From contig CM074523.1 in NCBI GenBank assembly GCA_037379345.1, positions 28,178,995 to 28,242,994 on the forward strand: 64,000 nucleotides of DNA. The letters run 5' to 3'. Made by a program: the position numbers and the translations under genes. The DNA is from Perna viridis (Eukaryota). This document shows, piece by piece, positions 12,201-56,480 of this stretch. Numbering within the stretch: position 1 is the first letter of the stretch; each line of letters starts with the position of its first letter. A model generated the notes under the pieces. That model was given only the letters and a program-made list of their open reading frames with translations, made no database searches and was not told where the DNA came from.

Positions 12201-15200
12201 AATAGCTGGGTTTACCAGGGGATGAATTATGTTCTTTGTTTGTGTCATTTAACCAATTTATGTTTATAAAAAAATACTCAAGGGTTGTTTATATACAGAC
12301 TCTGATAAATACCTAAAACATTATTATACTTGACACGTAAGTTGTTTTATGTATGTAAGTTCACCAAAATGTTTCACGTATACCTAGAAATCATCTATGT
12401 TTTAAGGACTTTATCCTTGAAATATCTTATTTTTTTCAGGAAATATTATGCATAATGCCTGGCCTATTGTACTTCCTCGCCATTCCTTCAATGTCTATGT
12501 TAATGTTCTTATATTCCATTGGGAATCTGCATAACGTGTCATGGGGAACAAGGGAGACAAAACAGGCATCATCTGAACCAAAATCTAAAGAGAAGAAACA
12601 TGTTCCTGAGAAAGAAGAAAAAGGATATTTTTGCACGTTTGGAAGCTTTCTTGGGTAGGTTGTCTTTCAAGGTGTTTGAACAAATTATGGTTATGATTAA
12701 TCAATTACAATTTATAGCGAGCCCCGCGAAGCAGTTTGAGCTCTACGGTAATTACATATACTACTTAATTTTTCTGAAGGTTTCTTAAGGTTATCCGATG
12801 TACTAACGAAAAAAAGTCTTTGAAGTAATAAAACAGTCACGGTCCTTACGGAAAAGATTCATCGCTTCCTTAAATCAAACAAATAAACATATATAGGTTA
12901 AGATTACGTTTCAGTAAAAATAAATTCATCCTTTCTGATAGTTTCGATTTTTTTCTTCATTTTGTTTTTTTTTCTTATTAGAAGGAGTGGATATTGTATT
13001 TTTACAAAGTTCGGGAAAGACGTGGATGTACGTACTTGTATCTCCACTTTTCCATTCTTGCTGTTGTCAAGAACCTTACACGCAATGGACAAAAATGTAA
13101 CCCCATTTGTAATATCCAAATTCCTTTATTATTTTTACTAGTCACGCACAGACGGTACATTTATGGTAAAGCTCATGATGTTCGCTGATTTAGGCAATGC
13201 CTACTCAATTAATCGACGTTTTACATATGCACCCGACTGTTCTGAGTATATAGGAATTAAGAGTTTGGTGATACATCCATTCAATGAATTGAAACATCTC
13301 TTGGTATTAATCTTTTACAGCTTTTTAGGATAATATAAATATTTCCAATTCTCTATTCGCAGAAGACAACCTCATAAATCAACATATTATCACATTATTA
13401 ACATAAATTTCATATTTTTATACCGATTTGTCAGCCTCATAATTTACAATTTCTATCTAATAATCCATTATGGCTCCGCCGCATTCTTCATGCAATTTAT
13501 ATGGGGAAAGTTAACCGCATATATCAAGCATAGCATTAAGCGTTAGATAATTGAAACTCTTCGCACAATTGCTCCTGCGTGTATTGAAAAAAGCGAAGAA
13601 CTGCACACCTTGTTATTGAATACTATGACACCATGTTCTTCACCTTTAAAGGGTTTGTATGCTTTTCTTTGACAGATGCATATTCTGTCCTACTAATACG
13701 TACAGCAAAGACGATTTTCTCTATAAAAATATGATGAATCAAGTACAATATATGGGGAAGAAAGGAGCAGATGACAATGGTAAATGAAATTCGATAAATC
13801 AGGCAAATTTGACAAATAAATTGACGGTTATTATTCGAACAACCTGACTGCATAGGAACACATTCATAATATCCGTCTAACTTATGTCTCACTATATCGT
13901 CAATTTATTTCTTTCTCCAAAAAATTGTATTCAAAACATGCTTGGATGCACATTATGGCTATTCAAAGGATATCGATTTAGAAGTCTTACAAATTCATTT
14001 GAAAATGTCCTTTTGTTGACCAGTAACGAGTAAAAATAATGATGTAGTTGTAAAAATATTTATTCTGCAAAAAAAAAAAAAAACAAAACAATTAAGCGGA
14101 TATATTCGGCGGAGAGTACACTAAACTGCATTAGATGTTACTACATACAATACTCACAGCTTGGCGTGTTCCGACCGGGTACTTGTTTACAATCGTATCC
14201 AAAACAGATTTAATAGTCCCAAAACTGAGGTATTTCGTCCTGATCAAGAAACTGTTAGCTTCATTGTAATGCTTGTCTAATTATTTAGAATTGTATTTTT
14301 TAGCCATTACAATTAAGATTATCTATAAATTCAAAACATGACCTTCTTCACATGTTCGCTATTTGGATTTGTTTCCCAGGTAATCAGCCTATAGAAGACA
14401 ATAAGGGTAAAATCGATGATCAAGATAAGATAGGCGAAGAAAACGAGGAAGACAAACAGCCCAAATATAAGAAACAAAAGAAGAAACAAAAAATGAAGAA
14501 AACGAAACGTGACCCGTATGAGGAATATCATCTTTATGTGGATAAAAACTTGCAGTCTATATCAGATGAAGAGACAAGGTTTTGGAAAAAAATCATTCGA
14601 AAATATCTGAAACCGTTAGAAGAGGACGCCGACAAGAAAAAGAAAGTTGAAGAAGATCTTATTGACCTTCGGAATAGGGTTTCTTTGTTTGTATATCTAC
14701 TAAATGCTATTTTGGTAACAATAATGTTCGGTCTTACTCAAGTAAATGCGTTTGCAGATACTCTATCATTTCAGTTTAAATGCTTTGACGGTAAAGATGT
14801 TCAGGTTGTTCCGATAGCAATGCTTTTCTCTGCTGTGTTTGGACTCCTACTATTGATCCAGTTTATAGGAATGTTGTATCATAGGTTCTCAACACTTATT
14901 CATATATTAGCCAGCACCAATATCTTCGAAACCGCTGAAAGTCGTGAATCAAAACTTGATGATCAGTTTGTCGAGTTATTGATATCACCAGAAGAGCCAA
15001 AGCCTGTACCACCTCAATCAAATCTGGTATCCGACAAAAACCGGAAACAGTTGGATAAGAACAGAACGATAATGGCGGACAAACAAAAAAGTTTTGTTCA
15101 TTTAAATGATGTTGTACGAGCAAACACAGTAAGGATGACAATGCTACAAGGGACACTTTACAAAAAGCACAACGATATTGCTAATAAAATTCTTTTGAAA

Positions 15201-15455
15201 TGGCAAGCACTCGCTAAATTACGCAAAGTTGCACCCGGTGGCAAGCTGGCACATTTTGGTGACGTAGTTGATTTTGCCAAACATCAAAATCAACATGAAA
15301 GAAAGAAAAGCCTTGATTTATCCGACGAAGATGTTAAAAGAGCTGGAATTAGATCAACAACACCCGGTACAAGAAATAGCGACACCAGAGTTGAACATAT
15401 TCACGAGAATTCATCGTCTGACGACAAATCATCTCCTGAAGATAGCAATGTTTAG
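1..15455 (+). CDS. chs: Chitin synthase (GT2), 5'-partial; exons <1-266, 873-972, 1721-1851, 2306-2388, 2902-3010, 8760-8913, 9489-9696, 10052-10252, 10577-10974, 11744-11908, 12440-12654, 13676-13779, 14380-15455
   Basis: The spliced frame is open with all introns GT-AG and phases matching. It contains the metazoan CHS motifs CATMWHE, HVFFDDAF, TPYG, RHKKRWSQ, LDGDVDF, AACGRIHP, QQFEYAVSHW, CSPGCFSLFR, QGEDRW, QRRRW and SWGTRE, plus the C-terminal TM segments. Confidence 0.96.
425..530 (+). mobile_element. Short tRNA-derived SINE-like fragment
   Basis: B-box-like GAGTTCGAGTCCC at 434-446; no complete cloverleaf. Confidence 0.35.
873..972 (+). CDS. chs: Chitin synthase exon
   Basis: Poly-T plus CAG acceptor; RIFVSSFFCGVFLDLSLLQNRRR...; donor GTAAAA. 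Confidence 0.88.
1721..1851 (+). CDS. chs: Chitin synthase exon (CATMWHE)
   Basis: ...TLYACCATMWHETANEMTQLLKSIFR; donor GTAACA. The acceptor position is less certain. Confidence 0.85.
2306..2388 (+). CDS. chs: Chitin synthase exon
   Basis: RLDMKQYTNNLKAEATGKSSDVETFDLE; phase 2 to phase 1. Confidence 0.85.
2902..3010 (+). CDS. chs: Chitin synthase exon (HVFFDDAF)
   Basis: AHVFFDDAFDP...VNSYVKTFIEVMN; donor GTAATT. Confidence 0.92.
5216..8665 (+). mobile_element. Decayed Ty3/Gypsy internal region (gag-PR-RT-RH-IN) in a chitin synthase intron
   Basis: gag-like WEQYLKRFEYY and QFERHMFR; protease FLIDSGASINVI (~6025); RT RLCVDMRQ and IADDII; RNase H VDAS and YSQTERE; integrase AHESHQG, IDLSGP and SDNGSQF. 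Many stops and frameshifts; no LTR pair found. Confidence 0.93.
8760..8913 (+). CDS. chs: Chitin synthase exon (TPYG...KKRWSQ)
   Basis: SFVHQRQ...RTPYGARITWKLPGGNLLCVHLKNKNKIRHKKRWSQ. Confidence 0.94.
9489..9696 (+). CDS. chs: Chitin synthase exon (DGD)
   Basis: VMYMFYIL...LALDGDVDF...GAACGRIHPIGS. Confidence 0.95.
10052..10252 (+). CDS. chs: Chitin synthase exon
   Basis: GPMVWYQQFEYAVSHWLQKATEH...CSPGCFSLFR...VQYDQ. Confidence 0.95.
10577..10974 (+). CDS. chs: Chitin synthase catalytic exon (EDR, QRRRW)
   Basis: GEDRWLCTLLL...FNQRRRWTPST. Confidence 0.96.
11072..11325 (-). mobile_element. Penelope-like (Naiad-type) element, 3' end fragment
   Basis: Reverse complement of the family 3' end seen at 42330-42604 and 56244-56480. 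Confidence 0.85.
11744..11908 (+). CDS. chs: Chitin synthase TM exon
   Basis: LQYAAILSSIYVIVMVVVLIG...VIAALVHPK; phase 0 to phase 0. Confidence 0.92.
12440..12654 (+). CDS. chs: Chitin synthase exon (WGTRE)
   Basis: EILCIMPGLLYFLAIPSM...NLHNVSWGTRE. Confidence 0.94.
13676..13779 (+). CDS. chs: Chitin synthase exon
   Basis: GCIFCPTNTYSKDDFLYKNMMNQVQ...; bridges phase 2 to phase 1 as required. Confidence 0.75.
14380..15455 (+). CDS. chs: Chitin synthase terminal exon
   Basis: EETRFWKKIIRKYLKPL...LIDLRN...LLIQFIGMLYHRFSTLIHILAS; stop TAG ends at 15455. Confidence 0.93.
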
Positions 15456-18047: not shown

Positions 18048-18720
18048 CATAGAAATACAGACATACACAACAAAGAACATAAAGTAAATAATATGAGCAT
18101 ATGAGCAAATCAAACTCCACTAAAAACTGGGAGTATTGACCAGGTGCACCGGTCGGGTAAGCGTCCTCTGCATTTCTAGAAACACCCGACGAGTTGCTCA
18201 TAAAAGGTCAAGCCCGGGGTAGTCGAAAGAGGAAAGGAACACTATGACACGTTGAACAAATCAGTTTTCATGGCGCCGATGGAAACACTGTAACGGTCCA
18301 CAAGTTCATGATGACGACCATAAAGACTTCTTTAGTGATGACTTCAGTCTTGTAGCAACATAACTCTGCTCCAGAAGCCTATTTGTTAGAATTCTAGCGC
18401 AATAAAAAAAGTCTGCGTATTTTCGGCAAGCTCTGGCATAACGTATGAGTTAAATGAATGATATTGCAACATATTAAAGGAAAGTGGACAATTCTGAATG
18501 AAAAGTCATCACGTTTGTCATAAAGTTTGGTCAATAGTTTTCCTGTACCGTCGATTTCTAAGTGTAGGTCAAGGTATGAAACTGACTTCACAGTGTCTGT
18601 AGTATCCTTTATCTCAAGTTCTTTGGGGTAGATGCGATGTTTCAAATCCCTAAAATTAGGATTGTTTAAATATAATACGTCATCTATATAGTGGAAACTG
18701 AGATTAAAGGATCCAGCTAA
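18048..18720 (-). mobile_element. Penelope-like (Naiad-type) RT 3' fragment
   Basis: SFHYIDDVL...YPKELEIKDTTDT...YLDLHL...KLYDKRDDFSF, followed by the family 3' UTR. Confidence 0.9.
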
Positions 18721-18787
18721 AGGGTCAGCATACCTTACCTTACTCTTAGAGATCAATTCAAAAGAAAAAAAAACACACTCATGATCA

Positions 18788-21709: not shown

Positions 21710-24700
21710 ATGGCAGAGTCATCAGACAGAGATATAGTTTTCCGACGAAACCAAGAAGATCGTGAAGTGATATAGCAAAATGATTATGAAAACGAAACTT
21801 TAGAAGATGAAAGACAATTCTTACATGACAGAGGTGACGGAGACGTCCGGGAAAATGGTCCACAAAGACGGAACAGAGAGGTACAGGGAGATGCAATTAC
21901 TGTGATGTCCTACAAACTGTCGGTTAAACCAGAGATTTTTGACCACGAGAAACCGTTAGCGTTGGGGATGGCATTAAAGGGACCAGCAAGAACTTTCTAC
22001 ATAAGCCTATCAGGTACAGACAGACAGACGTACGATGCCTTGTCCAAAGACTAGCCCAGAGATTCGGCAGTACAAGACAGAGAAGCCGATGGTTGTCCAG
22101 ACTTGAGAGTAGGAAAAGAGTACCAGGATAGTCAGTTGCCGTACTAGCACACGATTTAAGACAGATAGCACCGAGAGCCTATACAGACCTAGACGGCAAA
22201 GCACAAGAAGTGTTGGCCCTGAACCAGCTCTATAAGAGCGTATCACCACAGGTTAAATACCAATGTACCAACCAGGGGTGTGAGACAGTCACAGACGCTG
22301 TTGAAGTTATAGAGCGGTATGAGGCGATAGTTGGCGACAGTACAGAAAAGAAAAAGTCTAGTGTTAGGAAGGTGACAGAAACAAATTGCCCTGAACAGAG
22401 CCACAAGAATCATAGCGAAGATAATCAGATGGCAGAGGCATTGGACAGGCTTACAAGATCGGTTGACCGCATAGATGAAAGAAACGGTCAGACAAATAGA
22501 GGGTATGGTAGACCAAATTTTTATAGCAGAAATTTCAGAAAACCGCTAGCATGTCAGACAGACCACCTTGTAAAAAAACTTTGCAGCGTTCTCCTAGTGC
22601 AAAGAAGAGTTCAGAGCTCAACAACAGAGCCAGCACAAGCAAGATACACAACAGAAGAGTAACAACTCCAGAATTACACCTTCAATGCAGAACCAGGGAA
22701 ACTTCAGATCTCAATGACTCGATAGGCCGGGAGACAGTGGGCAAATTACGGTCAGAATATTTGAGAATAGGACAATTGGGAAATATTCTGGGGAATTTAC
22801 GACAATGGACTTTATACCAGAGGATATATTAAAACTTTACCACTAGATGTTTTATTTGATAATGGTTCCACCTCCACTTTATTGGATTACAAAGTTTACA
22901 AGAAGTGAACAGAAACTTCGAATTTATAGATTGAATTAGAAAATGCAGAGTACAAAGTTTATGATGTTAATGGAAAAAAGCTAAGATTGCACGGAATTTT
23001 ACCATACGAACTCCTTTTAGGGAGCACCTCATACAAGGTTACGTTTTTAGTATGTAGCATAGACATTGATGTCATTTTTGGCCAAGACTTTCTCATTGAA
23101 AATGTTACCAAAATTGACTACAGGAAACAAACACTGATGAAGATGAAATACAATGCTGGTTTGGTGGACAGGCCAATGTGAGATGTAGGGTCGTCTCGAA
23201 AGAAACAATAACCATTCCGGAGAAAAGTAGAATGTTTATACCAGTAACTGTTCAAAACAAGGAATATCTTGGTACATGGGGACTGAATGATGCAGGTAAG
23301 AACGCGAAACCAGATTATTATCTGACAAGAGTAATTGTTGATCCACATGATAAAGACGTCAAAATACAGTTAGTCAACTTGGGAAACACACCAGTCACAG
23401 TCCATGCAAAGAGAAACTTAGGTATCTGCGAAACATAATTCGAGCAAGACCAATCAACAATAGCCCACTGCTATAGAATTCGACAAAGCGATGATCTTCC
23501 CACTGAAACAGTAATAGAGTACCTTCAAGATCCATATGATAGGAGCAGAGAACACCTCCATGATGCAGAGAAACCGAAAGTAGCAACACTTCTCACACAA
23601 TTCCAAGCCGTTTTCTCAAAGTCAACTGACGATCTGGGTAGAACAGACCGGGTACAACATCCTATCAATACAGGTACAGCAGCTCCTATAAGACAGCCAC
23701 CTAGGAGACTACCACTAGGAAAACAAGAGATCGAAAGGGAAGAGATAGCCAAACTTCTGAACATGGGAGTAATAGATCCTTCTACCAGCCCATGGTCCTC
23801 AGTAGTACTGGTTGCAAAGAAAGATGGATCCACTCGTTTCTGTGTAGACTACAGAGCACTGAACAATGTCATAACTCATGATGCCTATCCACTACCAAGA
23901 GTAGACGAATGCCTAGACCCCTTGAATGGTTCTGAATGGTACAGCTGCCAGGGATTTTTCCAGATTGGCCTTGATCCGAGAGACAGAGAAAAACAGCTTT
24001 CTCTACCAGCCAAGGGCTCTATCAATTGACGGTAACAACGTTTGGCCTAGCCACGAGTCCTTTGGCATACGAACGTCCTATGGAAGACGTCTTGCGAGGT
24101 TTACAATGGTCCGAATGCCTACTTTACATGGATGACATCATTGCCTCGGCTCATAATGTTGATCAGGAACTTATCAGACTCGAGCATGTTTTTACCAGAC
24201 TCCGAGAAGCCAACCTTAAGCTGAAACCATCTAAGTGTGTCCTTTTTCGGGAAGCTGTTAAGTTTTTGGGACATGAAATGGTCAACTCCCAAGAATTTCA
24301 AGGAGGTAAAGAGCTTTCCAGGACTATGTGGGTACTACAGAAGACATGTCAAGGGATTTGCCGACATCGCAAGGCTTGCAAGGGAAAAAAGCTAGTGTGG
24401 ACCAGTGAATGCAATCAAGCTTTTGAATTCCTTAAGCAAGCAATGAAAAGTCCACAAGTGCTCACGTACCCACAGAATAGACAAGAATTCATCCTCGATA
24501 CGGATGCCAGTAATGTAGCAGCCGCGGTAGTTCTAACCCACGAAATTGACGGAAAAGAGCGGGTCATAGCATACATGAGCAAGACCCTTAACAAACACGA
24601 AGAATCCTACTGCACAACGAGGAAAGAACTTTTAGCAGTTGTGATGGCTCTGAAGACCTTCCACTATTATTTTTATGGTCAGAAAATACACTTGAGAACA

Positions 24701-26340
24701 GATAATGCTGCAGTAAGCTGGTTGAAGAACCTTAAAAATCCTTCTGGTCAAATAGCAAGGAGGCTGCAGGTTTTGGGCAGCTACAACGTGACAGTATCTC
24801 ACAGAAGTGGAAAGAAGCACAGCAATGCTGATGCCCTTAGTCGAGCGCCCTGCAAGATTTGCAAGAGGTATGAGAAACATGATGAAGACACTAATAAAGA
24901 TGGAGAGAAAATGGTCAACCTTGACGAACACCTTGGTGGAACTGAAAATCCATGTTCCTTGAACGATGGAGGTCATAACGGAGATCAAAGTACTGAAGAT
25001 GAGAGGGTCGTATCCAAGCAGCTTTCCGAGGAACATCAATCGGAAACCTTTACTTAATGTACAACGAGGGATATAACGAGAAGTCAGCAACCAGAAGTCA
25101 GGAACAGTCAACTTTTAGTAGGATGGGAACCGTCACTGATAAGACAAGAATAACTAACAGATGTGAGCATATCACCACTTTTTGTTGCAAAAGAAAACGG
25201 GGAATCTAGACCTGACTGGAGTATGATATCACCGAAGGGCGCTGCATTGAAGACCTTATGGCACAGTGAGAAAGATTGGAAATACGAGATGGAATGCTCT
25301 ATAGGAGATGGGAACTTGATGGAGGGAAAAGCTCAAAGCTCCAGCTCATCGTTCCAACAAACAAAAGACAAGATGTACTGAAGCTTTGCCATGACATACC
25401 AACGTCTGGTCACATAGGTGTTGAACAAACGCTAGCAAGAATCAAAGACAACTTTTATTGGTCAAAAGAAAAGAAAAGAACGAAAGAATCTGTTCAAGAA
25501 TTCTGCAGAAGATGTGATCGCTGTTTTGCAGGTAAACCAAAGAACGAAAGAATAGTAGCCCCTCTTGCCCAGTACATAGTCGGAGAGCCCATGGAAAGAG
25601 TCGCATTAGACATCTTGGGTCCACTACCCATTACAAAACAAAATAATAGATACATATTGGTGATCATGGACATGTTCACAAAATGGACAGAAGCTGTACC
25701 AATCCCTTCCCAAGATAGCACTGTCGTGGCCAAAGCACTCATTGACCAGTTTGTCGGCATGTTTGGAACCCCATTGCAGCTCCATACAGATAAGGGGGCA
25801 AATTTCGAATCAGTAATATTCAGGAAAATGTGTGATCTATTAGGCATAGACAAGACTCGAACCACGAGTTACAAACCACAATCAAATGGTGCAGTCGAAA
25901 GATACAACAGAACCCTTCTGACAATGTTAACAATTTACTGTGGAAAGCAACAAAATTTATGGGATTAATATCTGCAGCAGGTCCATCCTCTGATGCTGAT
26001 ATGTATATCATCAACCTGAAAAAGAAATTACAAGAAAATCATGAAATAGCAGGAAAGTCTTTGAAACAATCTTCAATATACCAGAACCATCATTTCGACC
26101 TTAAGGCGAAAAAACGCTCATTAAAAGCGGGACAGCCAGTTTGGATAAGTGGGAGTATGTTCGAAACTGACGTCTGCATGGAAAGGGCTGTATGTAATTG
26201 AAAAGAAAATTGATGATATAACTTACCGAGTGAAGAGGTCTGTTCGCTAGCCATCCTCGGTTTACCATATTGATAAGTTAACCTTGTATTCCGGAAGGAA
26301 TATACCATCATGGACAATACGTTATGTTGGAAGATATGAA
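21710..26340 (+). pseudogene. Gypsy gag-pol, frameshifted
   Basis: Protease-like LFDNGST (~22855); RT SPWSS, RFCVDYRALN and LYMDD; RNase H LDTDAS and YCTTRKELLA; integrase HDIPTSGH...CRRCDRC, DILGP, DKGANF and NGAVERYNR. Confidence 0.93.
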
Positions 26341-26576
26341 CATCAATGCAAAGGAGAAGATCAGCTTTCCGTACTTACAGGAGAAAAAGAGGGACGTCCA
26401 CAATTTAGGAATTTGAGGCTGGTTTGATCACCCAACGGTCAAATCACATAATCCAGTTAAGTAGATATTAGGCTAAGACGGGAAAAGAACGGCGACCTGA
26501 AATGACTTAGCACTGTGGTGGGATATCATAACCAGTAATAATGACAGTATGACTCAAAGATGTCACTTATCTCAGG

Positions 26577-28364
26577 ATGTCAGCAGTTGTGAAGACGAAG
26601 TGTTGGCTGTGCCCAGAGACGTGTAGTAGCGCCAAAGAATTGCAGAATCATGCAGCATCCTCAAAGCATTCTGCAATGAGAGTTGTCTGTCCATGGTGTT
26701 TTGAAGAACATACCTACAGAACCACGGCGGAGCTTCTGAAACACGTGGACAAGAGGTACAAGTACGTCCTGGATGAGATGAAGAAAGGAGACTTCTTTTC
26801 AGAAGGGAATGGCAACTGGATGGCCCTGAAGCCACAGGACTACAAGAGAGTTACGAATCCCACAGATTACAGCAGTGTTGTTGCAATAAAGACCAGGTCC
26901 ATAGTAGAGAGATGGACGGAGAAGATGAAGAAGACACCATCAAGGAACAAAGAACAGTGGAAAAAAGAATGGGCAGCCAAGAAGACCGGAGAGACAACAC
27001 CTCATAAAGAAGTAAGAAGACTATACAGTCCCTCAAAGCCATCCATTCCTGAGGCAAGGCTCCAGCTAGTGGATCTAGAACTGTCGTCTAAAGGACATGT
27101 TGCTTACCTCCTTGATGAAGGAGGCACCATCGGAGATGTTTGGTACAAGACCGAGATAAACCAGGAAGTAATGATGGACAGAAGGGTCTCTGAAAGGTTA
27201 CTTAGACGACTTCAGACCATAAACTGCACCAGAACCATCCCAGGCAACTTTAATACATTGGCAGGAGACCACCACGGGATTACCAAGGCGGCAGCCAAAG
27301 AACTGGGTATTGCTGAGAAGTACGTCATAAAGGTATTCCGACAGATAACATCATTCTCTGTGGTGTCTAGGAAAAGAAAACTCCAGTGTTTGGCAGAAGA
27401 GTTGAGAGTTGAAGATGATATTGAGATTATCGAGCCTGGGAAAGCAGACCAGAAGAACAAGCAGACAAAAAAAGAAAAGACTGCCCCCAGCATAGCAAAT
27501 TCAACACCATCAGATAAACCATAAGAACAGAAGGCTTTAGAAGCAGAACTACCAGAAAAAGAGTCCATACCATCAAGTCTCCAATTTATTAGGAATGAAC
27601 AACTGAAAGATGTAGAGAAAGAAACATATGAAAGATTACAAGATTCTGACACCCAGAAGGAGGACCAAGATGATACGCCATTGTTTGCCAAGGTAGTGGA
27701 GAAATTGGTAACACCTGCTAAGACGCCATGGAAGAGACTCAAGTCGGAGTACATAGGACGAAAAATGCGCTTGACGATGACAAACTTAACCAAATAGATG
27801 AAGAGGTAGAGAATATAACAAGCCTACCACATGTTGACGATGAAGGCAAGACTCCAGTGAGAGAAAAGGGTCACCGCCTTCTAACTTCAGAAGTTATGCC
27901 CTTGCTACCACCAGCAAGACGAGTATGGGCTGGCATTGATCCCATCGAGTCGGTGAAGACCAGCAAGACAACCATCGTATGGCCACCAGGAAAACTGGTC
28001 AGAGATGACCGAGGAGGTAAAGTTGACCGCGTGGACTTGCACAGCCATGGTAATGGAAATAGAGAATGGAGTAGGGTTAATTAAGGACATCGGAGAACAA
28101 CTGGGTCGGTACGCCTTCCTAGCACTGCCAGGAACCCTTGTTACAAAAAAGGAGAGCAACAAGAACGCTAACGTTCGCCTCCTTAATTACAATATACTCA
28201 GAGACATCTGCCACGGAGAGATAAAGGGAATGGAAGCGGAAAAGTGGATAGACGTTTTCGTTGCAGCAAAGGTGGGAGCTGACACTTTGGGTTCACACGT
28301 CCTTCCTAAGATCAAGCATATTCCTCTCCGTCTAGTCCTTGAACCGATCCGCGCAACGATTTGA
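26577..28364 (+). pseudogene. Accessory third ORF of the Gypsy element with two N-terminal C2H2-like zinc fingers (disrupted)
   Basis: CWLC-x12-H-x5-H and CPWC...H; continues through an in-frame stop at 27522 and two frameshifts via ORFs 27728-28084 and 28005-28364; lies between the integrase and the PPT. Confidence 0.7.
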
Positions 28365-35490: not shown

Positions 35491-35603
35491 TAAAATAAAA
35501 TATACATTTATTACTTAAATCAGGGATTTTAAACAAAAAACAAAGAAAAAATTCAGCAAGATTTATAGCGTTATTGAAAAAAAATATATATATTAGATGA
35601 TTT

Positions 35604-35714
35604 CTATTTGACAATTAGCACATGATAAACGTCTGCATCAGATAAGATGGTCGTCGTATCTCCAGATATCAGAATTGTCTCTTTAAAATTGTCGTCACAT
35701 CTTTGTACACCTAT
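35604..35714 (-). CDS. Last exon of the ShKT/amidase-like gene
   Basis: TTTTAG acceptor; IGVQRCDDNFKETILISGDTTTILSDADVYHVLIVK*. Confidence 0.72.
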   Translation of the reverse strand: MGVQRCDDNFKETILISGDTTTILSDADVYHVLIVK

Positions 35715-38700
35715 CTAAAAGTAAACAAACAGTTGTTTTCATATGAGGCAAAAACAATCTGTATGATGACTAAATTATGCGGCATAGAGTTCTAATTGAT
35801 GCATTTAGTCGTACTTTAGTATTTTGCAGACCGAATGGTCCAATAATCCTTCAAATTCGGAACCACTAGACCTTTATCGCTATATACTTTGTAACGTGAC
35901 AGGCTGAGGAGTTCTGTTCAGTGCTTGCTTAACAAATAACTTTTTCGCAATATAAAATCATCGTTTCCAATGGCTTGCGTCATATACCGCCACTTCCAAA
36001 GTGGTGGCATATAGTGGTTTGTTCGTCATTCCTTCCATTGCGCAGGAAAAGGGGGAGGGGTTATCTTAACAAATACTCACTGAACGGAATTGAATGAATT
36101 GTTCACGCAACATGTTCCTATTACGCACTTCTTATTTATATGTTAATACAAATCATTTTGGGGTTTCCCATACCCCCACCCGCCCATTTAACATCACTGA
36201 ATGGAAATATTTCACTGTGTACCTCCTATGTTTGGCTTAAATCATAGAGTAATTAAGGGAATCACAGTTCTAGCGGAAATCAAAAGAATGTAATCCAGAG
36301 ACAAAGACCAGACATGAAAAACAGACAAACACAACAAAGAACAAAAAGCATACAAAGTAACAGAAGTAAATGAGCAGCTCGGACTCCACTGAAAACTGGG
36401 AGCATGGACCAGGTTCAGTGGTAGGGTGAGCGTCCTCTGCTTTTCTAGGAACATCCGCCGATTCACGCGTTTATGATGACGACGATAAAACTTTTGAAGT
36501 GAAGACTTCAGTCTTGTAGCAACATATCCCTGTTCAAGAAGCCTAATTGTAAGAAGTCTAGCGCGATACAAAAAGTCTGCGTAGTTACGGCAAGCTCTGG
36601 CATGATGTATGAGCTATGAAATGAAAAACTCTTTATGCAGTTGCTGAATGGATGTTGCCTCCAATGAAAGGAAAGTTGGCAATTCTGAATGAAACTATTG
36701 TCGTAAAGTTTTGTCGATAGTTATATGAGGCTGACTTCACAGTGTCTGTAGTATCCTTTATCTCAAGTTCTTTGGGGTAGATGCGATGTATCAAATCCCA
36801 AAAACTAGCATTGTTTAACGATAATACGTCATCTACATGTTTATAGCGGAAACAGCTAAGGATCTAGCTAAACGATGTTCCTTCATTCAGTTCAGATCAG
36901 CTATGAAGTCAGCCTCATATGAGTGAATGAATAGGTCAGCAAGTAGAGGAGTACAATTTGTTGCCACTGGAATGCCGAACGTTTGTTGAAAAACTCGTCC
37001 ACCACACTGGACAAATATGTTGTCGATGGATAATTCCAGCATTTTGAAAACATCTTCGTTTTTCGTTTAATAGAAGTAAATAACAACATGAGGACTTATC
37101 CGTATACCATTCATTTAATCAGTCAACAATATTATCATCCCTAGAATCTACTATCACGAACTAAAAAATATATGATATAAAAAGAAATTTACTTGGCTTA
37201 CCTTAAATCCGTTTTTAGTACAGCCTAAAAATAATCCTATTTCGTGCGAAAATGACCCAAAAGATGACACTGGAGTATAGAGTGGTATTAAGTCACAACT
37301 CAGTGTAACCTTGAAATATATGGCATTATCTTTAATAAGAAGAGCAATATTATATTTTTTAAGCATTACAACTTGTCAATTTATAAGTAAAAACAGGAAA
37401 AAATGATTTAAAATAGAAAATGTGACAAGATTACCAATGAGACAGTCATCTACCAAAATCCAAGCAACGAAAAACTATAAATTTTTAAAGGTCACCACAC
37501 CGTCTTTAATGAAGGGCCAAACCCATATTATAAAGTAATCTGTAAAAGGCTCAGAAAAAAAAAATGAAACTATTCATACAAGATGAAAATCTATCCTATA
37601 TATTTAAAAATACATAAACAAACTAAGAACGAACATAAAAAAAACAACAAATAAAAACAACATCAACTGGATTACATGTTCCTGGCCTGAGACATCAAGT
37701 ATTTGGGGGATATACTTGTTAATGAGCGATCATATTTTCTCCATACATGGAAAAGTGGTGGTAAAATACAGCAATACAAATATGTTGAATGTGGATTTAA
37801 CTGTTCAGATTGATAAAGAATACAAACACTTAAGCAAATAGAACAAAAGACAACAAGCTGCGTCTACCTTGTAAAAGTAATCACTTTTTCTGTGGGCTAC
37901 TTCAAAATCCTAAAGTAACTAATAAGCACGTCCCGTTTACTAAAACAAAAATATCAATTAAACACGCTCAGCAGGACAATATGCCAGCATATCATTTTGC
38001 AACACACTAGACGAAGTAATAAAATCGGTAAGATGCTGGACATGTGAGTAATCTCAGGATAGAAAATTCCATCTTAAGAATTTGAAAACTTTTTAAAGTT
38101 ATTTTTTGTATAACTTGTATTTTAAGTATTTTTAGCTCCTTTTACATGTATTTTAACTTTTTTCCGTTACTAATATCTTCTGTACCGTTTGATGGCTTTT
38201 TAGTCACTGAGACGGGCCCCGGCCATTGTTTTGTTTTGTCCGTTTGAGTTCTAATGTACCAGAAATAAATAGCCGAAAAGGCAGCGGGTGGTTCAGCGCG
38301 CTATAAAATCTGGTGTTACCCCACTTGTTTTATTGGTAATGTCTGTATCAAGTCATGACCATTTCTGTTGTTTCAAACTTTCGGGTTTTGCCTTACAATG
38401 GTAATTTGTAATTTTCATACGATCTTTTCAATTTCCAACCGTTTTGATTTTCATGTATCACGTGATTATTATAATTAAGCCAAAACTCAAATAAATCGCA
38501 GCTAACAAAAATTATTAAGCATGATTTCATTATTATAGATAGCAGTGATTTATCAAATGTTTCCAAACATTTTCGATAATTCAAACTTTGAAATAAATTC
38601 TGTAATTTCATTCTCGGCCTGTATTCGGCCAATACTTCACAAACCGAATACATCACGCCGTCGTTTTCAAATTCTACAATTAAATGCATGTTGAAATTCG

Positions 38701-41700
38701 CAATAGTGGAAGAACTCTAAATAATAAATTGCTTATCGTGAATTACTAAATTCTGAAATTTCAATCTCTTTCTCCGCCAAAACGTCACAAAACATGGTAT
38801 TTTGACAATTACCTGCCTTCCTTTTGTCCATGTTTTGTCTGTTCGAGCACCACAAAGAGACAGAACAATTGCATCCATATTTGTTCTAGTTCCATCTGAA
38901 CAGAAGTCTGCCGATGGATGAGACAGCTTTGTTATATTGGTCAAGAAAGTTGTAACTGCTCCTATGTCACAATTGTTGGAATCTGTTCATAGATAAAAAT
39001 ATCCAGTTGTTTCGGTATATACAGTAACTGATGCTACATAAACAGCTCTTGGATAGTAAAAGTGTTCCATTTACACCCTATAACATTCCCAAAATACACC
39101 ATATACTCTACAACTTTGGCAGCGTACTAATTTTAGCTATTTTCGTGGTGAATATAAAAGTGCAGAAAATAGTACCAGCGATATTAATTTTTGACACTAT
39201 ATAAGGCTTATCATTTTTTGAAATCGCGAAAATTGATACCCGCGAATATTTTAAATTGGCAGAATCAGCAAAAATTAGCAACCGCGAAAATTCATACGTT
39301 TACAGTACCTGGTCAATTCCCCATTGTACCTTTCACATTTCCCATTCCCCATTGTCCCTTTCACATTTCCCATTGTCCATTTCCCATTCCCATTGTCCTT
39401 TTCCCATTCCCACATTGTCCCTTTCACATTCCCCATTGTCCCATTCCCATTTTGCATTGTCCTTTTCCCCATTCCCCATTGTTCCTTTCCCTTTCACATT
39501 TGTTCCTTTTCCATTCCTAATTGTACGTTTACACCACATACCTGGCCCATTCCCAATTGTCCTTTTCACATTTCCCATTGTCCATTTCACATTCCTCATT
39601 GTCCCTTTCACATTTCCCATTGTCCATTTCACATTCCCCATTGTCCCTTTCACATTTCCCATTGTCCATTCTACATTTTCCAATGCCCTTTTCCCATTCA
39701 TCATTGTCCCTTTCCCATTCGTAATTACATTTACACCATATACCTGGCCCATTCCCAATTGACCCTTTTCAATTCCACATAGAATCCTTTTCATTAGTCT
39801 TTATCAAATATTTATAATATCAAAATGAATTATATATTGTTTAATTCTTCAAGGTTTTTTTTTGATAAATCAAACATATTAAAGATAGAATTAAAATAGA
39901 TACTTCAAAAACTAATGTAGCTATACTCCCTATGTAAAGTAACAAGTCTCTATACTTTCCTTATTCCTCATCCTGAATATACCATAGAATGGGAAGTTCT
40001 GTACTACATTTCCGGATATGAACATTTAATTTCCCGGTATTTATAGTAAAATGATACACTTAGCAGCTTGTCTGTTTTCCTTGTCTAGTGTTGTATGTAT
40101 TATTTTATGTATTTTAGGTTATTTATTGTGTCTATTTTCCTTGCCCAAGTTGCACGTTTACTTTTGTTGGGTGAATGTATTATTTTTTTTTATTTTATGT
40201 TCTTTATTGTGTATGTTTTCCATGTCTAGTGTTGTGTCTTGTTCCTTTGATAACTATTTTACCAAGTTATTACCACATGTGTTGCACGTGAAAGGACATA
40301 TGCTCTCGACGATGGCATCGGAACACTGGTGTGACATTTTATTACAGTCAGTCATGTTGTCTGCACAATACATTCTTTTGGCATCTGTAAAAATGATTTC
40401 AGAATTAACTATATTACAGTAAATTAACAATTTTCAAATGTATATTATGTTTGCAATGCTATGCACATGGGTACAAATTAAATGGTTTTGTTTTATAAAA
40501 GTGAGTTATTTTATAAATAAAACATATATATTTTCAACGAGCACTTCGGTGAATGGCTTGCAAAAAGCAGCCACTGGTCATCCTTTCGGTTTACCCCTCC
40601 ATGTAATTAGTGCCCGTCGTTATTCTTTATTTACTAAGTTTTATTTTTGTGCGTTTCGATTTGACATTTGTTTTTGTTATTTTCGTTTTTTTTTTGCCCT
40701 TTCCGGTCGTGTTTTTCCCACTATTCGCCCCTGTGTGTTGCCTTCTAGTGTAACGTTTGATCGTAACAGGGTTTCTTAGTGATTTGCTTTAAGTAGACTT
40801 GTTTTTAACACAAAATAGATTGCAACTCTATTGCATTATAAGTACAACAGCAAGCCATATATATTAATATGTACTAGTTACGTGCATATGATTAAATAAA
40901 AAAAATATACCACAAATATTGCCAACTATCACTTTATATTACTATATACACTCATGGTTAAAGCTTATACCAACTTTGATTGGTTCAGGGTTAAAACAAA
41001 GTTGACATACCACAAATGCCACACGCACGTGGACAGAGCATTTTCAAGTGAATCCCAGCAGTACATTCTCCCGGAAACAGTTCGGAACAAATCGGATTTT
41101 GGTCTACACATGTTGAAGTGCTGTTTTTAAGGGTACCGGTTATATTCGGCGTAGTTGGATTAGTAGCTGGCTGACTGCTGAATAAACTTGTAGTCATAAT
41201 TCTAGTTGTAGTCCGATTAAATGATGGACTAAACGTTGTAAGACCTTACAAAAGTAACAACGTTTAATGGCTTGCTAGACAAGTGAAGATACCTAGTCCA
41301 GCTAAATGGTGGGCTAGACGAAGGAATAAGACCTTACAAAAGATACAACGTTTAATGGCTTGCTAGACAAGTGAAGATACGTAGTCCAGTTAAATAGTGG
41401 GCTAGACAAAGGAATAAAACCTTACAAAAATACAAAAACAAAATTATGAATAGCTAGAAAAGGGGATCAAATCTTGTCCAATGAAATTAATGGCTAGACC
41501 AAGGTATGTAACTTTAAATGACCGTGTAGACAAGGTGACAAGACCTAGTCTAATTAAATTCCTATCAAAAAGATGTAACCTTATAAAATTACAACGTTGA
41601 ATTGTTAGATGGTCAAGTGAAATGGCTGACTTAACGGTATATAAATTTAAAATAAAGCCGTTAAATTGTTAGCTGGATAGAAAGGCAAGACCTGGTCTAG

Positions 41701-44472: not shown

Positions 44473-47400
44473 TTTTTTGTTTAAGAAATCAAGAAAACCA
44501 AGATTGTAGCGGAAATCAAAAGAATGTAATCCAGGGACAAAGTCCATACATGGAATATGAAACAAACAAGAAGAAAAACCCAAAATATCCCAAAATAGTA
44601 CATACAGAGTAACAAAAGTAAATTAGCAACTCGGACACCACTAAAAACTTGGAGCATATACCAAGTGCGCTGGCAAGTTAAGCTTCCTCTGTCAAAAATA
44701 CCAGCCAAGTACTCATAAAGAGTCAAGGCCAGGGTAGAGGAAAAGAGAACTGTAACCCGTTGAACAAATCAGTTTTTATGGTGCAGAGAGATGCAACATA
44801 ACGATCTACAAGTTCATGATGACGACCGTAATTTTCTGTTGTGATGACTGCAGTCTTGTAGCAACATAAACCTGTTCTAGAAGCTTAATTGTAAGAAGTG
44901 TAGCGCGATACAAAAAGTATACATAGTTACGGCAAGCCCTGACATAACGTTTTAGTTTTGATTTGAAAACTCCATACGCAGGTGCTGAAGGAATGTTGCC
45001 ACAGGTGCATGGAGTTGCCATCACGGAATTAAAGGTCATCGCGTTTATCGGATGGCTTGGTCAATAGTTTTCCTTTACTATCGATCTCTAACTGTAGGTA
45101 AAGATATGAGACTGACTTCACAGTGTCTGTAGTATTCTTTGTCTCAAGTTCTTTGGGATAGATGCGATATATCGAATCCCTGGAGCTAAGATCATATGTC
45201 ATCTATATATCGGAAACTGAGATAAAGGATCTAGCTAAACGATGCTCCTTCTACTGGATCAGATCAGCTATAAAGACAGCCATAAAAGAGTGAAGAAATA
45301 AGTCAAAAAGTAGAGGATCACAATTTGTTTGCATTGGAATGTTGACTGTTTGTCGAAAAAGACGTTCACCACACTGGACAAATATGTTGTCGATCAAAAA
45401 TTCAAGTATCTTGAACACATCTTCTTTGGTATATTTGGAAGATGATTTGGAATATTTTTACAAAGTATGAGGAATCTTTACAAAGGACTACATATTTATA
45501 AAATTGACTAGATCAGTTTTAACTCAAACTGTCAGAAGAACCTGTTCTAGGACAGTTCTAAAAGTGTCATATAACAGTAATAAAGTCAGCTCTCCTGACA
45601 GTTCTAGCAAAGCATGCTTTATTTCTGCCCAGCTTTACGAGACCCAGCTCTGCTACAACGGTAAGAGGATCTAGATCCCTCCCTTGATGCAGTTATCGTA
45701 GAATTATACACATAAATTCGCCTTTTTACTGAATAAATTATATTACAAAAAGTTTCGATTTTGTCTTACATTTACATATGTAGTGATGTGGTGAGACAAA
45801 TGATCGTACACGTACATCATTAATTTTTATTGCAAATAATTTAATTTTTTCTTTGTGAAAGAGTAATCAAGGGAACCAAAGTTATTAAACAACTCGCAAT
45901 TTAACCAATAATTTTAGTTCTTCAATAACAACTATTCAAACCCAAAAAAAAAATGAAAAATTGACAAGTACTATAATGTTAAACATGCATATACATGTGC
46001 AGTGTCAAAAAGCTTTAAGATATGAAATCCACACAGAAACTTTAAGATATGGAATCCACACAGTAACTTTAAGATATGGAATCCACACAGTAACTTTATG
46101 ATATGGAATCCACACAGAAACTTTTAGATATGAATCCTACAAAGTAACAAAAACATTTCTTGTGTGACTATACCAATACAATCAAAACTGTATAAAAGGC
46201 TATGCTATGAGTATATTAAGACCTATGTTGTTATTTTAGCAAGTGTGTTTAATCCAAAAGTCAATTGTTATTGTTTGTTTCTTTGTATCAATACGTTGGC
46301 AAAGGCTTGACGTGAAATGCAAAACAATTAGTGCTAAAATAGTCAATATCTTTATTTTTCTTGGTTGAACATCTTAAAATGGAAAATCAACAATAAAATA
46401 TTCAAAAAAATATGTCAATCAAGGAGGACTTTTTGAATTCTTAGTATCTTCGATGAGTGTGAACACTTATTTTCATTTGAAAACCTAAAAATTAGATGAA
46501 AAGTTGTAACAGGAATACATTTAAACATATTTTGTTAATTTTTGCTAGTACTATAACTCTAACATTGTTAGAAAAACTTCAAATACTCGCCTGCGTATGA
46601 TGTTTCATGTCACAACTCATATGTGAAGCCAGATCTTGTCCTAACTACGCAGGCTTTTTGTATCGAGCTAGACGTCTTATAATTAAAATTCTCGAACGGG
46701 TTATGTTGCTACAAGATTAAAGTCATCACTACAGATATTTCATAGTCGTCATCATGAACAACTCGTGGTCGTTACGTTGAATCCATTTGCACCATGAAAA
46801 CTGATTTAAACATTTCATTGTTCGGCAGGTTTTTTTTTTTTTTTAAAAGCAGAGGACGCATACCCTACGGTGCACCTGGTCCATGCACCCAGTTTTAAGT
46901 GGAATCCGAGTTGCTCATTTACTTTTGTTACTTTGTATGTATTACTTTAGTTACTTTATGTTCTTTGTTGTATTTGTCTGTTTTCCGTGTCTGGTCTTTG
47001 TCTTCGGGTTACATTCTTTTGATTTTCTATAGAATCGTGGTTCCCTGAAATAATCTAAATCAATTTGAATTTTTATAATCTATCTGAATGACTAGCTCCT
47101 TTGGTACTGTGACGTCATTAAAGTCGATTTCTCCACATTTCGTGTTTACAATAACCTCATACAAAAGAAATTTTTCATTACGAATAATTAATTGATATTT
47201 TAGGATGGACTGTAATTCATCAAAAGTTAAAGTAGAAGCATGAACCGGGTTTGAACTTTTACAAACAAGCTTGTTTATTTTACCTCAATATAAAACATAG
47301 AAACATTTCCTAAAGTAAAATCGAGATCCATATATAAATATCTCGATTCCTAAACAAAATTTTTTTCAAAATAAATCGTTATTCTCTTTCTTATACACTT

Positions 47401-54214: not shown

Positions 54215-56480
54215 TGATTGAAAATTAGAGAATGGGGCAATTGGTCTTTAATTTTGAAACGAATGAAAGTTTTAAGTAGGTCAATGAATGCCAAGGCTAC
54301 ATCAGTTTTCAAAGACCCCGATGTAGCAAAAACATTGTCTACTATACATGACAAATATGTTGTTTTGTCTGCAAAACGTTTTATATCCAATGTTTATTAT
54401 CAGAGGTAGACGTAGAAAATAATAGCAGTGATAGGACCTACACTGCTACCACTCTCTCCAAAGAGGAGATTGTGGAAAACCATAAATCTGTGCTATCCTC
54501 TTTTGGTCTCCCTACCAAGGACAATGATTGTGATTTACTGTCTATGTGCTGGATTCCTAAACTTCACAGGAATCCATAAAAACAACGTTTCATAGCTGGA
54601 TCTGCAAAATGTACCACCAAACCTCTTTCAAAAGTTTTAACTTCTATACTCACAACTGTCAAAGAGGGTCTACAGTCCTACCACAACACTTGTTACTCCC
54701 GTAGTGGTATTAATTCAATGTGGATCCTGAAAAATTCGAAAGATCTTTTGGAGACAATCAGTTCAAGACTATTATCTGAATATAATAGCATTAAAACCTA
54801 TGATTTTTCAACACTGTATACTTCTATTCCCCATACTCAGTTAAAATCCCGACTTCAAAACATTATACATCGTTGTTTTTCCAAAAAAAAGATGGTACAC
54901 CTAGATACAAATATATAGTTCTTGGTAGAGATTCCTCATACTTTGTAAGAAATAATTCCAAATCATCTTTCAAATATACAGAGGAAGATGTTTACAAAAT
55001 GCTGGAATTTTTAATCGACAACATATTTGTCCAGTGTGGTTGACGCGTTTTTCAACAGACGGTCGGCATTCCAATGGGAACAAATTGTGCTTCCTTACTT
55101 GCTGACCTATTCCTTCACTCTTATGAGGCTGACTTTATAGCTGATCTGATCAGATAGAAAGAATATCGTTTGGCTAGATCCTTCAATCTCAGTTTCCGCT
55201 ATATAGATGACGTATTATCTTTAAACAATCCTAATTTCGGGGATTTGATACATCGCATCTACCCAAAAGAACTTGAGATAAAGGATACTACAGACACTGT
55301 GAAGTCAGCATCATATCTTGACCTACACTTAAAAATCGATGGTAAAGGAAAACTATTGCCCAAACTTTACGACAAACATGATGACTTTTCATTCAGAATT
55401 GTCAACTTTCCTTTCATCTGTGGCAACATCCCTTCAGCACCTGCGTATGGAGTGTTAATATCACAACTCATACGTTATGCCATAGCTGGCCGAAACTACA
55501 TAGACTTTTTGTATCGCGCTAGAACTCTAACAAATAGGTTCTGGAACAGGGTTATGTTGCTACATGATTGAAGTCATCACTACAGAAGTTTTATGGTCGT
55601 CATCATGAACTCGTGGATCATTATGGTGTATCCATCAGCACCATGAAAACTGATGTATTCAACGGGTCATGGTTTTCCTTTCCTCGTTTGTCTACCCCGG
55701 ACTTGACTTTTTATGAGCAACTCGGCGGGAACCCCGTGTAGGTCCGGGTGTTAAAAGAATAGGCCTGCAGCAGCGCTAAGCTTGTCGTATAAGGCGACTA
55801 AATAGTGCTCAGTAACCTAGCCGGGGGCTAGGCGCTCTGCCCACAGAGCAACTGGGATGTGTGCCCGAGGTGGTGGAATGGGGTACCCCTGGCGTGTTAC
55901 ATGCTGGGGTTGTCAGGCTATAATACAGAAAACCTGACCGCAAACCATAGTGGTGTACCGTGTTGGGAAAGATGCCACATTCCTCGCACGTTAAAGAACC
56001 ATGCTGTGATATTCGATAGGAGAAGGAACCTATTCGCTCCGCCACAGGAGGCTAAATTGCCAGACCTTACCCATCCCCCCTTTTTCCAGAGGCAATCAAA
56101 ATTTGTCGACCCTATTATCCTTGTGTCCCATCCTTTTTCTTTCATTTCATGTTCATTTTATCATCCTTTTCATGTTTATCGTCTGAATATAGCTGAAATA
56201 TTGCTGCTCGGACGTTAAACCCCAACAAACAAACAAACAAACAAGCAACTCGGCGGGTGTTTCTAGAAAAGCAGAGGACGCTTACCCTACTGGTGCACCT
56301 GGTCCATGCTCCCAGTTTTTCGTGGAGTCCGAGTTGCTCATTTACTTTTGTTACTTTGTATGTATGATTTTAGTTACTTTATGTCCTTTGTTGTGTATGT
56401 CTGTTTTCCATGTCTGGTCTTTGTCCCTGGATTACATTCTTTTGATTACCGCTATGACCTTGGTTCCCTTGATTACTCTT
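54215..56480 (+). mobile_element. Longest Penelope-like (Naiad-type) copy: 5'-truncated RT, no C-terminal endonuclease, SINE inserted in the 3' UTR
   Basis: WIPKLH, MWILKNS, TYDFSTLYTSIPH, GIPMGTNCA and RYIDD. The ORF stops soon after the RT thumb, as in PLEs with an N-terminal GIY-YIG domain. Confidence 0.9.
55730..56243 (+). mobile_element. 514-bp SINE-like retroposon with a 14-bp TSD and (AAAC)n tail
   Basis: AGCAACTCGGCGGG duplicated at 55716-55729 and 56244-56257; internal GCACGTTAAAGAACC motif; 3' GCTGAAATATTGCTG...CGTTAAAC plus AAAC repeats. Confidence 0.9.

Follow-up and report, generated by a model that had tools for sequence, protein, structure and literature searches.

Domesticated amidase effectors (Dae) are a textbook case of animals acquiring antibacterial enzymes from bacteria. 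Animals also have non-catalytic peptidoglycan recognition proteins (PGRPs), sensors of amidase descent in which a catalytic residue has been lost. Among bacteria, RipD of Mycobacterium tuberculosis (Rv1566c, PDB entry 4JXB) is a papain-like, non-catalytic NlpC/P60 protein that, according to the title of its entry, is adapted to peptidoglycan binding. The described systems closest to the gene considered here are Tae2 and Dae2. In the available part of the preprint by Hayes et al. (bioRxiv 10.1101/2020.04.10.036376), Tae2 is presented as a cytoplasmic bacterial toxin with Cys23/His73 that is injected into rivals, and the Dae2 of ticks and mites as a protein that retains the catalytic Cys, loses its activity with the substitution C43A and lyses bacteria. 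The same part of that source confines its account of dae2 to ticks and mites, where it is a stand-alone domain, and treats all Dae as active enzymes. Here we describe a gene on the minus strand of a 64,000-nucleotide stretch of the bivalve Perna viridis (assembly GCA_037379345.1, contig CM074523.1; C13:28178995-28242994 in an assembly of 723 Mb and 46 contigs), referred to below as the window, that encodes a C-terminal domain on the Tae2 scaffold from which the catalytic residues are absent.

The bivalve domain and Tae2 (6WIN, from Salmonella Typhi; NCBIfam family NF033857, BPSL0067_fam) share their fold, a length of ~125-130 residues, and the motifs W-x-x-G, G-T-x-I-x-T-F / G-x-Y, the Gln of D-Q-W and a C-terminal N-x-D-x-F/Y-x-V-I. 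Unlike Tae2, the bivalve domain lacks the Cys, the His and the Asp, carries six cysteines and has an insert of 10 residues before helix 1, with a further deletion of 4-6 residues ahead of the His strand in mytilids; its gene has introns, and it stands at the end of a multi-domain protein that appears to be secreted. Dae2, which is secreted and expressed, is an animal gene derived from bacterial tae2, and the bivalve domain would share this type of origin. Of the features that characterize Dae, introns, a host genomic context and expression are found in the window gene, and retention of the catalytic residues is absent. Because these defining catalytic features are lacking and the cut-off of the curated hidden Markov model (HMM) is missed, the domain is in our view neither a Tae2 nor a Dae2 enzyme, but a variant of their shared scaffold that is new and catalytically dead. 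The likeness to RipD is one of principle only, as RipD is bacterial, belongs to another branch of the superfamily and has no disulfide framework, and the PGRPs, to which the first-pass annotation of the window compared the domain, are ancient animal genes with an unrelated fold (a T7-lysozyme-type zinc amidase). A literature search on Tae and Dae in combination with bivalves or molluscs, and on BPSL0067, returned no account of this family, and no link of Tae or Dae with bivalves beyond one passing sentence in the available part of PMC5303276; the original dae study, which lies outside the coverage of that search, may bear on novelty. The explanation that we prefer, and to which we give about even credence, is that of a Tae2-derived, catalytically dead, disulfide-locked domain that binds, most plausibly peptidoglycan, rather than cuts.

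The Tae2-like domain comprises ~128 residues at the C-terminus of a multi-exon protein and is encoded by three exons, called as phase-0. Exon A (38813-38982), whose first two bases complete an Asp codon divided by the intron, is in frame from 38980, contributes 56 residues and includes Cys1, Cys2 (within the bivalve-only insert of 10 residues), a Met at 38878-38876, Cys3 eight positions after that Met, and the W-x-x-G motif. Exon B (37202-37309; 36 residues) includes Cys4, the core P-V-S-S-F / G-x-F, and, at the position of the former catalytic His, a His (37246-37244) followed by a Glu (37243-37241), with Cys5 at +7. Exon C (35607-35714; 36 residues) is the last coding exon, with the stop codon at 35604-35606; it has a Val (35708-35706) at the position of the Tae2 Asp, keeps the Gln and supplies Cys6, and its strand motif S-D-A-D-V-Y-H-V-L-I-V pairs with the bacterial N-N-A-D-A-F-S-V-I-E. 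A first-pass annotation of the window, made by eye, had drawn the feature at 37202-38982. Both of these borders coincide exactly with splice joints, and the span takes in exons A and B, including the motifs NMDAIVLSLC (exon A) and SHEIGLFLGC (exon B), but it leaves out exon C and with it the last third of the domain.

The gene structure was examined by mapping the reads or contigs of four runs to positions 35600-41300 of the window (5,701 bases), comprising one contig run that is by its label a putative RNA run (X1) and three raw RNA runs (X21-X23). Spliced X1 contigs confirm four introns, with GT..AG joints at 41011|40384, 40274|38982, 38813|37309 and 37202|35714, and the depth is 205-429 at the splice joints versus 4-12 in the introns. 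These exon-exon joints indicate that spliced transcripts exist. No additional exon was seen in the X1 contigs between 38813 and 37309 or in the other introns of the mapped stretch, and the reading frame is open through all exons. One contig (record 4) covers 38811-38983 at a depth of 398 with 0 differences from the assembly; since contig and assembly agree letter for letter over exon A, the Met codon is no assembly slip. In X21-X23 the exons within 35600-41300 received zero reads, and the sole strong signal in these runs is a transposon fragment within the last intron. A few X21-X23 reads also fall on the intronic interval 38465-38655, with fixed differences at 38584 and 38601, and these probably derive from a related repeat elsewhere.

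The relationship to Tae2 was established through the bivalve and bacterial families. Bacterial members were sought in 401 Pseudomonadota genomes, one of which carries the family, and in 301 genomes of the order of that one, with six genes in five genomes. A profile built from five of these genes matches Tae2 in the PDB (6WIN, E=2e-43), which identifies the BPSL0067 family as Tae2. When an 18-row bivalve profile (A3) was compared with the bacterial profile (A2) using hhalign, the two aligned with a probability of 95.8% (E=8.2e-9) over 97 columns with 26% identity, in a register that was reproduced by MAFFT. NF033857 is also the best match in all three scallop proteins (E=2e-4, 4e-3 and 9e-3), at scores of 16.3-21.6 bits that lie under the curated cut-off of 27 bits. 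At E<=1 the combined alignment matched 3,020 database proteins, and among the 120 matches listed all the named ones are bacterial. Across the 143 rows of that alignment (18 bivalve and 125 bacterial) the W-x-x-G motif, the T-F / G-x-Y strand, the Gln of D-Q-W and the C-terminal N-A-D motif are kept. A kinship with Tae2/Dae2-type amidases, which the first-pass annotation had proposed, thus finds support in the profile alignment, in the NF033857 matches and in the predicted folds described below.

Standard annotation would have overlooked this relationship. Pfam matched only ShK in the three exons and nine homologues, PDB sequence searches with exons A and B and with the homologue P0016 gave no match, and NF033857 found nothing in the Perna viridis genome or in 14 control genomes. 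A tblastn search of plasmids with the scallop domain gave four matches, of which two (H1 and H4) are out of frame in unrelated genes and the other two are weaker. Families of this kind slip past Pfam, the NCBIfam cut-offs and PDB sequence searches, and comparison by family profile or by fold is needed to recognize them.

The fold was examined in the orthologous domain of Mytilus californianus (P0002), which was modelled with AlphaFold2 (AF2) on the 143-row alignment and yielded an alpha+beta structure with a predicted local distance difference test score (pLDDT) of 91.4 and a predicted template modelling score (pTM) of 0.87. In a Foldseek comparison of this model with the PDB, 6WIN is the sole match at E<=1e-3 (E=1.9e-4). 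VIA-align superposes the two with Z=14.0 and a root-mean-square deviation of 2.4 Å over 114 of 127 residues, so that the structural comparison with Tae2 suggested in the first-pass annotation, run here on the orthologue, has Tae2 itself as its best match; the next matches are CHAP endolysins (Z of 9.4 and lower), and RipD appears in the same list at Z=6.1. Helix 1 of the model spans residues 34-41, and the residue in the nucleophile column is the first of this helix, as in papain-like enzymes. A second line of evidence comes from the ESM Atlas, where the nearest clusters to residues 178-311 of a Pecten protein are BPSL0067 proteins of Pseudomonadota, with template modelling (TM) scores of 0.78-0.80 and a language-model feature similarity of 0.94, versus TM scores of 0.56-0.61 for CHAP and NlpC/P60 proteins. 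As the Pecten model was made from a single sequence with no bacterial rows, this agreement is independent of any bias in the AF2 alignment. The ESM Atlas returned nothing coherent for exon A alone.

Within this framework, all three conserved positions of the Tae2 active site are replaced in the bivalve proteins, of which 13, 12 or 8 rows cover a given column. The nucleophile column holds Cys in 125/125 bacterial rows and in none of 13 bivalve rows: the residues are Ala, Ala, Ala and Thr in Mytilus, Ser in the three scallops and in Pinctada, Met in the window, and Pro, Tyr, Ser and Ala in the Perna paralogues. The His column holds His in all 125 bacterial rows and in register in none of the bivalve ones. 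This column sits at a gap in both the hhalign and MAFFT alignments, and the bivalve residue was read by anchoring on the Cys that follows seven positions later, giving Glu in the window (with a His at -1), Gln in Mytilus, Leu in scallops, Phe in Pinctada, and Met, Lys and Gly in paralogues. The Asp of D-Q-W is found in 124/125 bacterial rows and in 0/8 bivalve rows, with Val in the window, and its invariance suggests that it may form part of the catalytic apparatus. With Cys, His and Asp all replaced, the domain cannot act as a Cys-His peptidoglycan endopeptidase. The by-eye correspondences of the first-pass annotation hold at each of these points: profile-profile alignment and MAFFT agree that the nucleophile Cys of Tae2 is the Met of MDAIVLSLC and that its His is the Glu of HEIGLFLGC, directly preceded by a His; retained as well are the Cys at +8 from the nucleophile position, the Cys at +7 from the His position, the W-x-x-G residues Trp and Gly, and the open frame. 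The same annotation spoke of a dyad lost by this gene. The absence of catalytic residues stands, but the loss is not this gene's own. Since no relative examined has the dyad, the loss of the catalytic residues is, on the evidence of the alignment, family-wide and older than the split between mussels, scallops and pearl oysters. The variety of residues in the nucleophile column, beside neighbours that are well kept, shows that selection has ceased to act on it.

The family shares a cysteine framework. Six Cys are invariant in the bivalve rows that cover them (13/13, 13/13, 13/13, 12/12, 12/12 and 8/8), and they probably form three disulfides. Cys2 lies in the bivalve-only insert; all 125 bacterial rows are gapped there, and the conserved C-x-D-G-T of the insert immediately precedes the former active site. 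Of the 125 bacterial rows, two have both Cys1 and Cys3 and none has just one of them, a co-occurrence that suggests a Cys1-Cys3 disulfide, possibly one that pre-existed among bacteria. The two bacterial members concerned are L102 (genome G480) and P0019, from a Neisseriaceae bacterium. The domain is also more conserved than the remainder of the protein in all eight species pairs compared (78-91% versus 54-75%; for example, 91% versus 69%). Together, the invariant Cys and the above-average conservation argue for a domain that is functional and non-catalytic. Secretion of the protein would be in keeping with the N-termini of orthologues, which by eye resemble signal peptides, with the ShK modules and with the disulfide framework.

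From these results we envisage the following course of events. The ancestor was Tae2, an amidase effector of bacterial type VI secretion with a papain-like fold, gained by bivalves through what was probably a horizontal transfer from bacteria. All three conserved active-site positions were replaced long ago, with the scaffold kept and probably locked by the six Cys, and the old substrate groove most likely now serves for binding, with the stem peptides or cross-links of peptidoglycan as the most plausible ligand, such that the protein would recognize or coat bacteria instead of lysing them. If peptidoglycan is indeed the ligand, domestication would have taken another path here, turning a weapon into a sensor, and bivalve immunity would gain a family of recognition proteins, of relevance to disease in aquaculture.

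Several observations weigh against this interpretation. Judged by sequence, the window exons alone are not above chance in comparison with bacterial Tae2: when an HMM of bacterial Tae2 only (125 sequences) was searched against 2,099 stop-to-stop pieces of the window, exon A ranked fourth (E=4.5, 4.1 bits) and the pieces of exons B and C were not among the better matches. NF033857 has no match in the three window exons, in the Mytilus proteins P0002 and P0012 or in the Pinctada protein P0005, and a profile restricted to mytilids (A6) aligned to the bacterial one with a probability of just 27.9% (E=6.4e-4), with the register unchanged. The by-eye alignment to Tae2 is accordingly indefensible from the window sequence alone, and yet it is right, its significance coming through the bivalve profile and the fold. 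The fold itself is that of the domain of a Mytilus orthologue and not of the joined protein of the window, the AF2 alignment is bacterial in 125 of its 143 rows, which biases the model towards the Tae2 fold, and AF2 run on a bivalve-only alignment (A1) reached a pLDDT of only 37.8. Expression is restricted to some runs. Finally, a conserved fold leaves the ligand undefined.

This last point bears on the most serious alternative, that the Tae2 fold has been kept as a stable, disulfide-locked module for some other ligand, such as a protein, a glycan, mucus, or shell or byssus matrix, in a structural or adhesive role. We consider this a possibility of some substance, though one we would accept only tentatively. 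Relatives of the window gene have mucin-like Thr/Pro-rich stalks, and those in Mytilus bear extra N-terminal modules, an architecture that would suit such a role; the freely varying nucleophile column and the C-x-D-G-T insert would fit a remodelled surface, and expression in some runs only also points this way. On the other hand, the core residues shared with Tae2 over the 143 rows fit a retained groove architecture, and dead relatives of cell-wall hydrolases, including RipD and the non-catalytic PGRPs, still bind peptidoglycan.

The first-pass annotation also entertained an enzyme with rewired chemistry. Cys2 of the insert (D-F-C-S-D-G) and the His at -1 could, for example, serve as a new dyad. 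Cys2 is invariant (13/13) and lies eight residues before the old nucleophile position, in the loop ahead of helix 1, and the His at -1 is present in the window, in 3/4 Mytilus rows and in the paralogue L013. However, this His is missing from 3/3 scallops, from Pinctada and from two other paralogous exons, where Cys2 is nonetheless kept. The six invariant Cys, found beside ShK modules in a domain that would be secreted, point to three disulfides. Cys1 and Cys3 co-occur in the two bacterial rows in the manner of a pair, and were Cys2 free, one of the six cysteines would lack a partner. The conserved Asp is gone as well (0/8). Considering the missing His and the invariance of the Cys in particular, new chemistry at this site is improbable.

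It is very unlikely that the Tae2 likeness is a product of chance or of modelling and that the domain has another Cys-rich fold, for instance that of a ricin-B-like lectin. Such a view could draw on the insignificant scores of the window exons and the mostly bacterial AF2 alignment, on an initial PDB profile search (A1) that gave only the ricin-type lectin 1ggp_B (E=1.8), and on the UniRef label of a Mizuhopecten relative, 'Ricin B lectin domain-con...'. Against it stand the hhalign result (E=8e-9, 97 columns, a single register), the consistent top rank of NF033857 in the three scallop proteins, the TM score of 0.8 of the single-sequence ESM model, and the bivalve-only AF2 run, which placed four of six secondary structure elements (two helices and two strands) at nearly the positions that they occupy in the final model; no beta-trefoil is present among the best 50 VIA matches listed. 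The ricin B lectin assignment was rejected, as P0015, P0016 and P0007 have no Pfam ricin match at E<=10 and the model is alpha+beta. In the case of P0015, from Mizuhopecten yessoensis, the ricin label may have been wrongly assigned by automatic annotation, and the C-terminal domain of this protein aligns with Tae2. A decaying pseudogene of a once-active Dae2-like amidase, to which the absent catalytic residues and the lack of reads in three RNA runs might point, is equally hard to credit given the open frame, the correct high-depth splicing in X1, the colinear Mytilus orthologues, the invariant Cys in a domain conserved beyond the rest of the protein, and substitutions of the same kind in lineages that have been apart since the early bivalve radiation.

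Returning to a dead, binding descendant of Tae2, its history can be drawn only in a provisional manner. The tree groups all seven full-length bivalve rows in a single clade, with a Shimodaira-Hasegawa approximate likelihood-ratio test (SH-aLRT) value of 100, and the bivalve stem in that tree is too long to name a bacterial donor. One speculative scenario would be a transfer of tae2 to pteriomorph bivalves independent of the one to ticks and mites, with inactivation ahead of the divergence of mussels, scallops and pearl oysters, followed by expansion into a multigene family of secreted, disulfide-locked modules for peptidoglycan recognition, fused to ShK, mucin-like and other domains. If true, a dead bacterial weapon would have been made into invertebrate pattern-recognition proteins of a new class.

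The extent of this family was determined with sequence and profile searches. A phmmer search of 1.84 billion representatives with exon A gave seven matches at E<=0.001: three Mytilus proteins (47-52% identity), one from Pinctada imbricata, one from Pecten maximus, and two repetitive proteins that were judged spurious. Later searches added seven Mytilus proteins and one each from Mizuhopecten and Ylistrum, and the nearest proteins recovered overall belong to Mytilus. The public names of the homologues are 'uncharacterized' or 'ShKT domain-containing'. The three window exons are colinear with the C-terminal 125-133 residues of these bivalve homologues, and exons A, B and C are 51%, 64% and 69% identical, respectively, to the domain of Mytilus californianus P0002; in tblastn comparisons with Mytilus proteins, exon B shows 59-64% and exon C 61-72% identity. 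The Pinctada imbricata protein P0005 (KAK3087869) has two apparent copies of the domain, at residues ~95-200 and 465-552; the second is without the middle third, where the gene model perhaps skipped an exon.

In the Perna viridis genome, a profile of the domain identified seven additional exon matches at six other loci (L009 and L012-L017; C14:25858365-25859226, C13:17419489, C12:29380529, C13:29076800, C12:26356900 and C12:18906938). The exons of these paralogues share donor or acceptor positions with the window gene. One of them, L015, has an additional Cys just ahead of the old His strand.

The remaining exons of the window gene lie upstream, likewise on the minus strand. Directly 5' of the Tae2-like domain is the second ShK exon (40274-40384), with both joints confirmed by splicing and a match to Pfam ShK (PF01549) over 40275-40382 (E=1.9e-4) at 22.4 bits, above the cut-off of 20.9. 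The first ShK exon (41011-41155) has a spliced 3' border, and 41155 is the limit of its tblastn alignment to Mytilus edulis P0012; PF01549 on 41012-41245 scores 16.1 bits (E=0.017), under the same cut-off of 20.9, and a Thr/Pro-rich stretch precedes this exon. Approximate exons of the same gene, located by tblastn only and colinear with Mytilus edulis P0012 (626 residues), lie at 47717-47550, 44400-44314 (weak, E=0.27), 43512-43354 and 43052-42957.

The introns of the gene contain repetitive DNA. In the intron that separates exon A from the second ShK exon, a 21-base minisatellite (39338-39720; 18.5 copies, 75% matches) accounts for long spurious open reading frames and a strongly negative GC skew. 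A transposon-derived repeat at 36200-37100, within the last intron and outside the gene product, is covered in all four runs at depths of hundreds to thousands, with variants and loose ends; this very high depth results from reads of other genomic copies. Further copies of this coding repeat, marked by the motif I-Y-P-K-E-L-E-I-K-D-T-T-D-T, are found in the window at 18394-18756, 45032-45202 and 55170-55571.

The window as a whole is AT-rich and contains retroelements, with the gene situated between these and a chitin-synthase-like gene. Retroelement open reading frames for reverse transcriptase and integrase occur at 5348-8714 and 22210-28364. Open pieces on the plus strand at 10531-11070 and 14352-15455 resemble, by eye, parts of what we take to be a chitin-synthase-type transmembrane protein.

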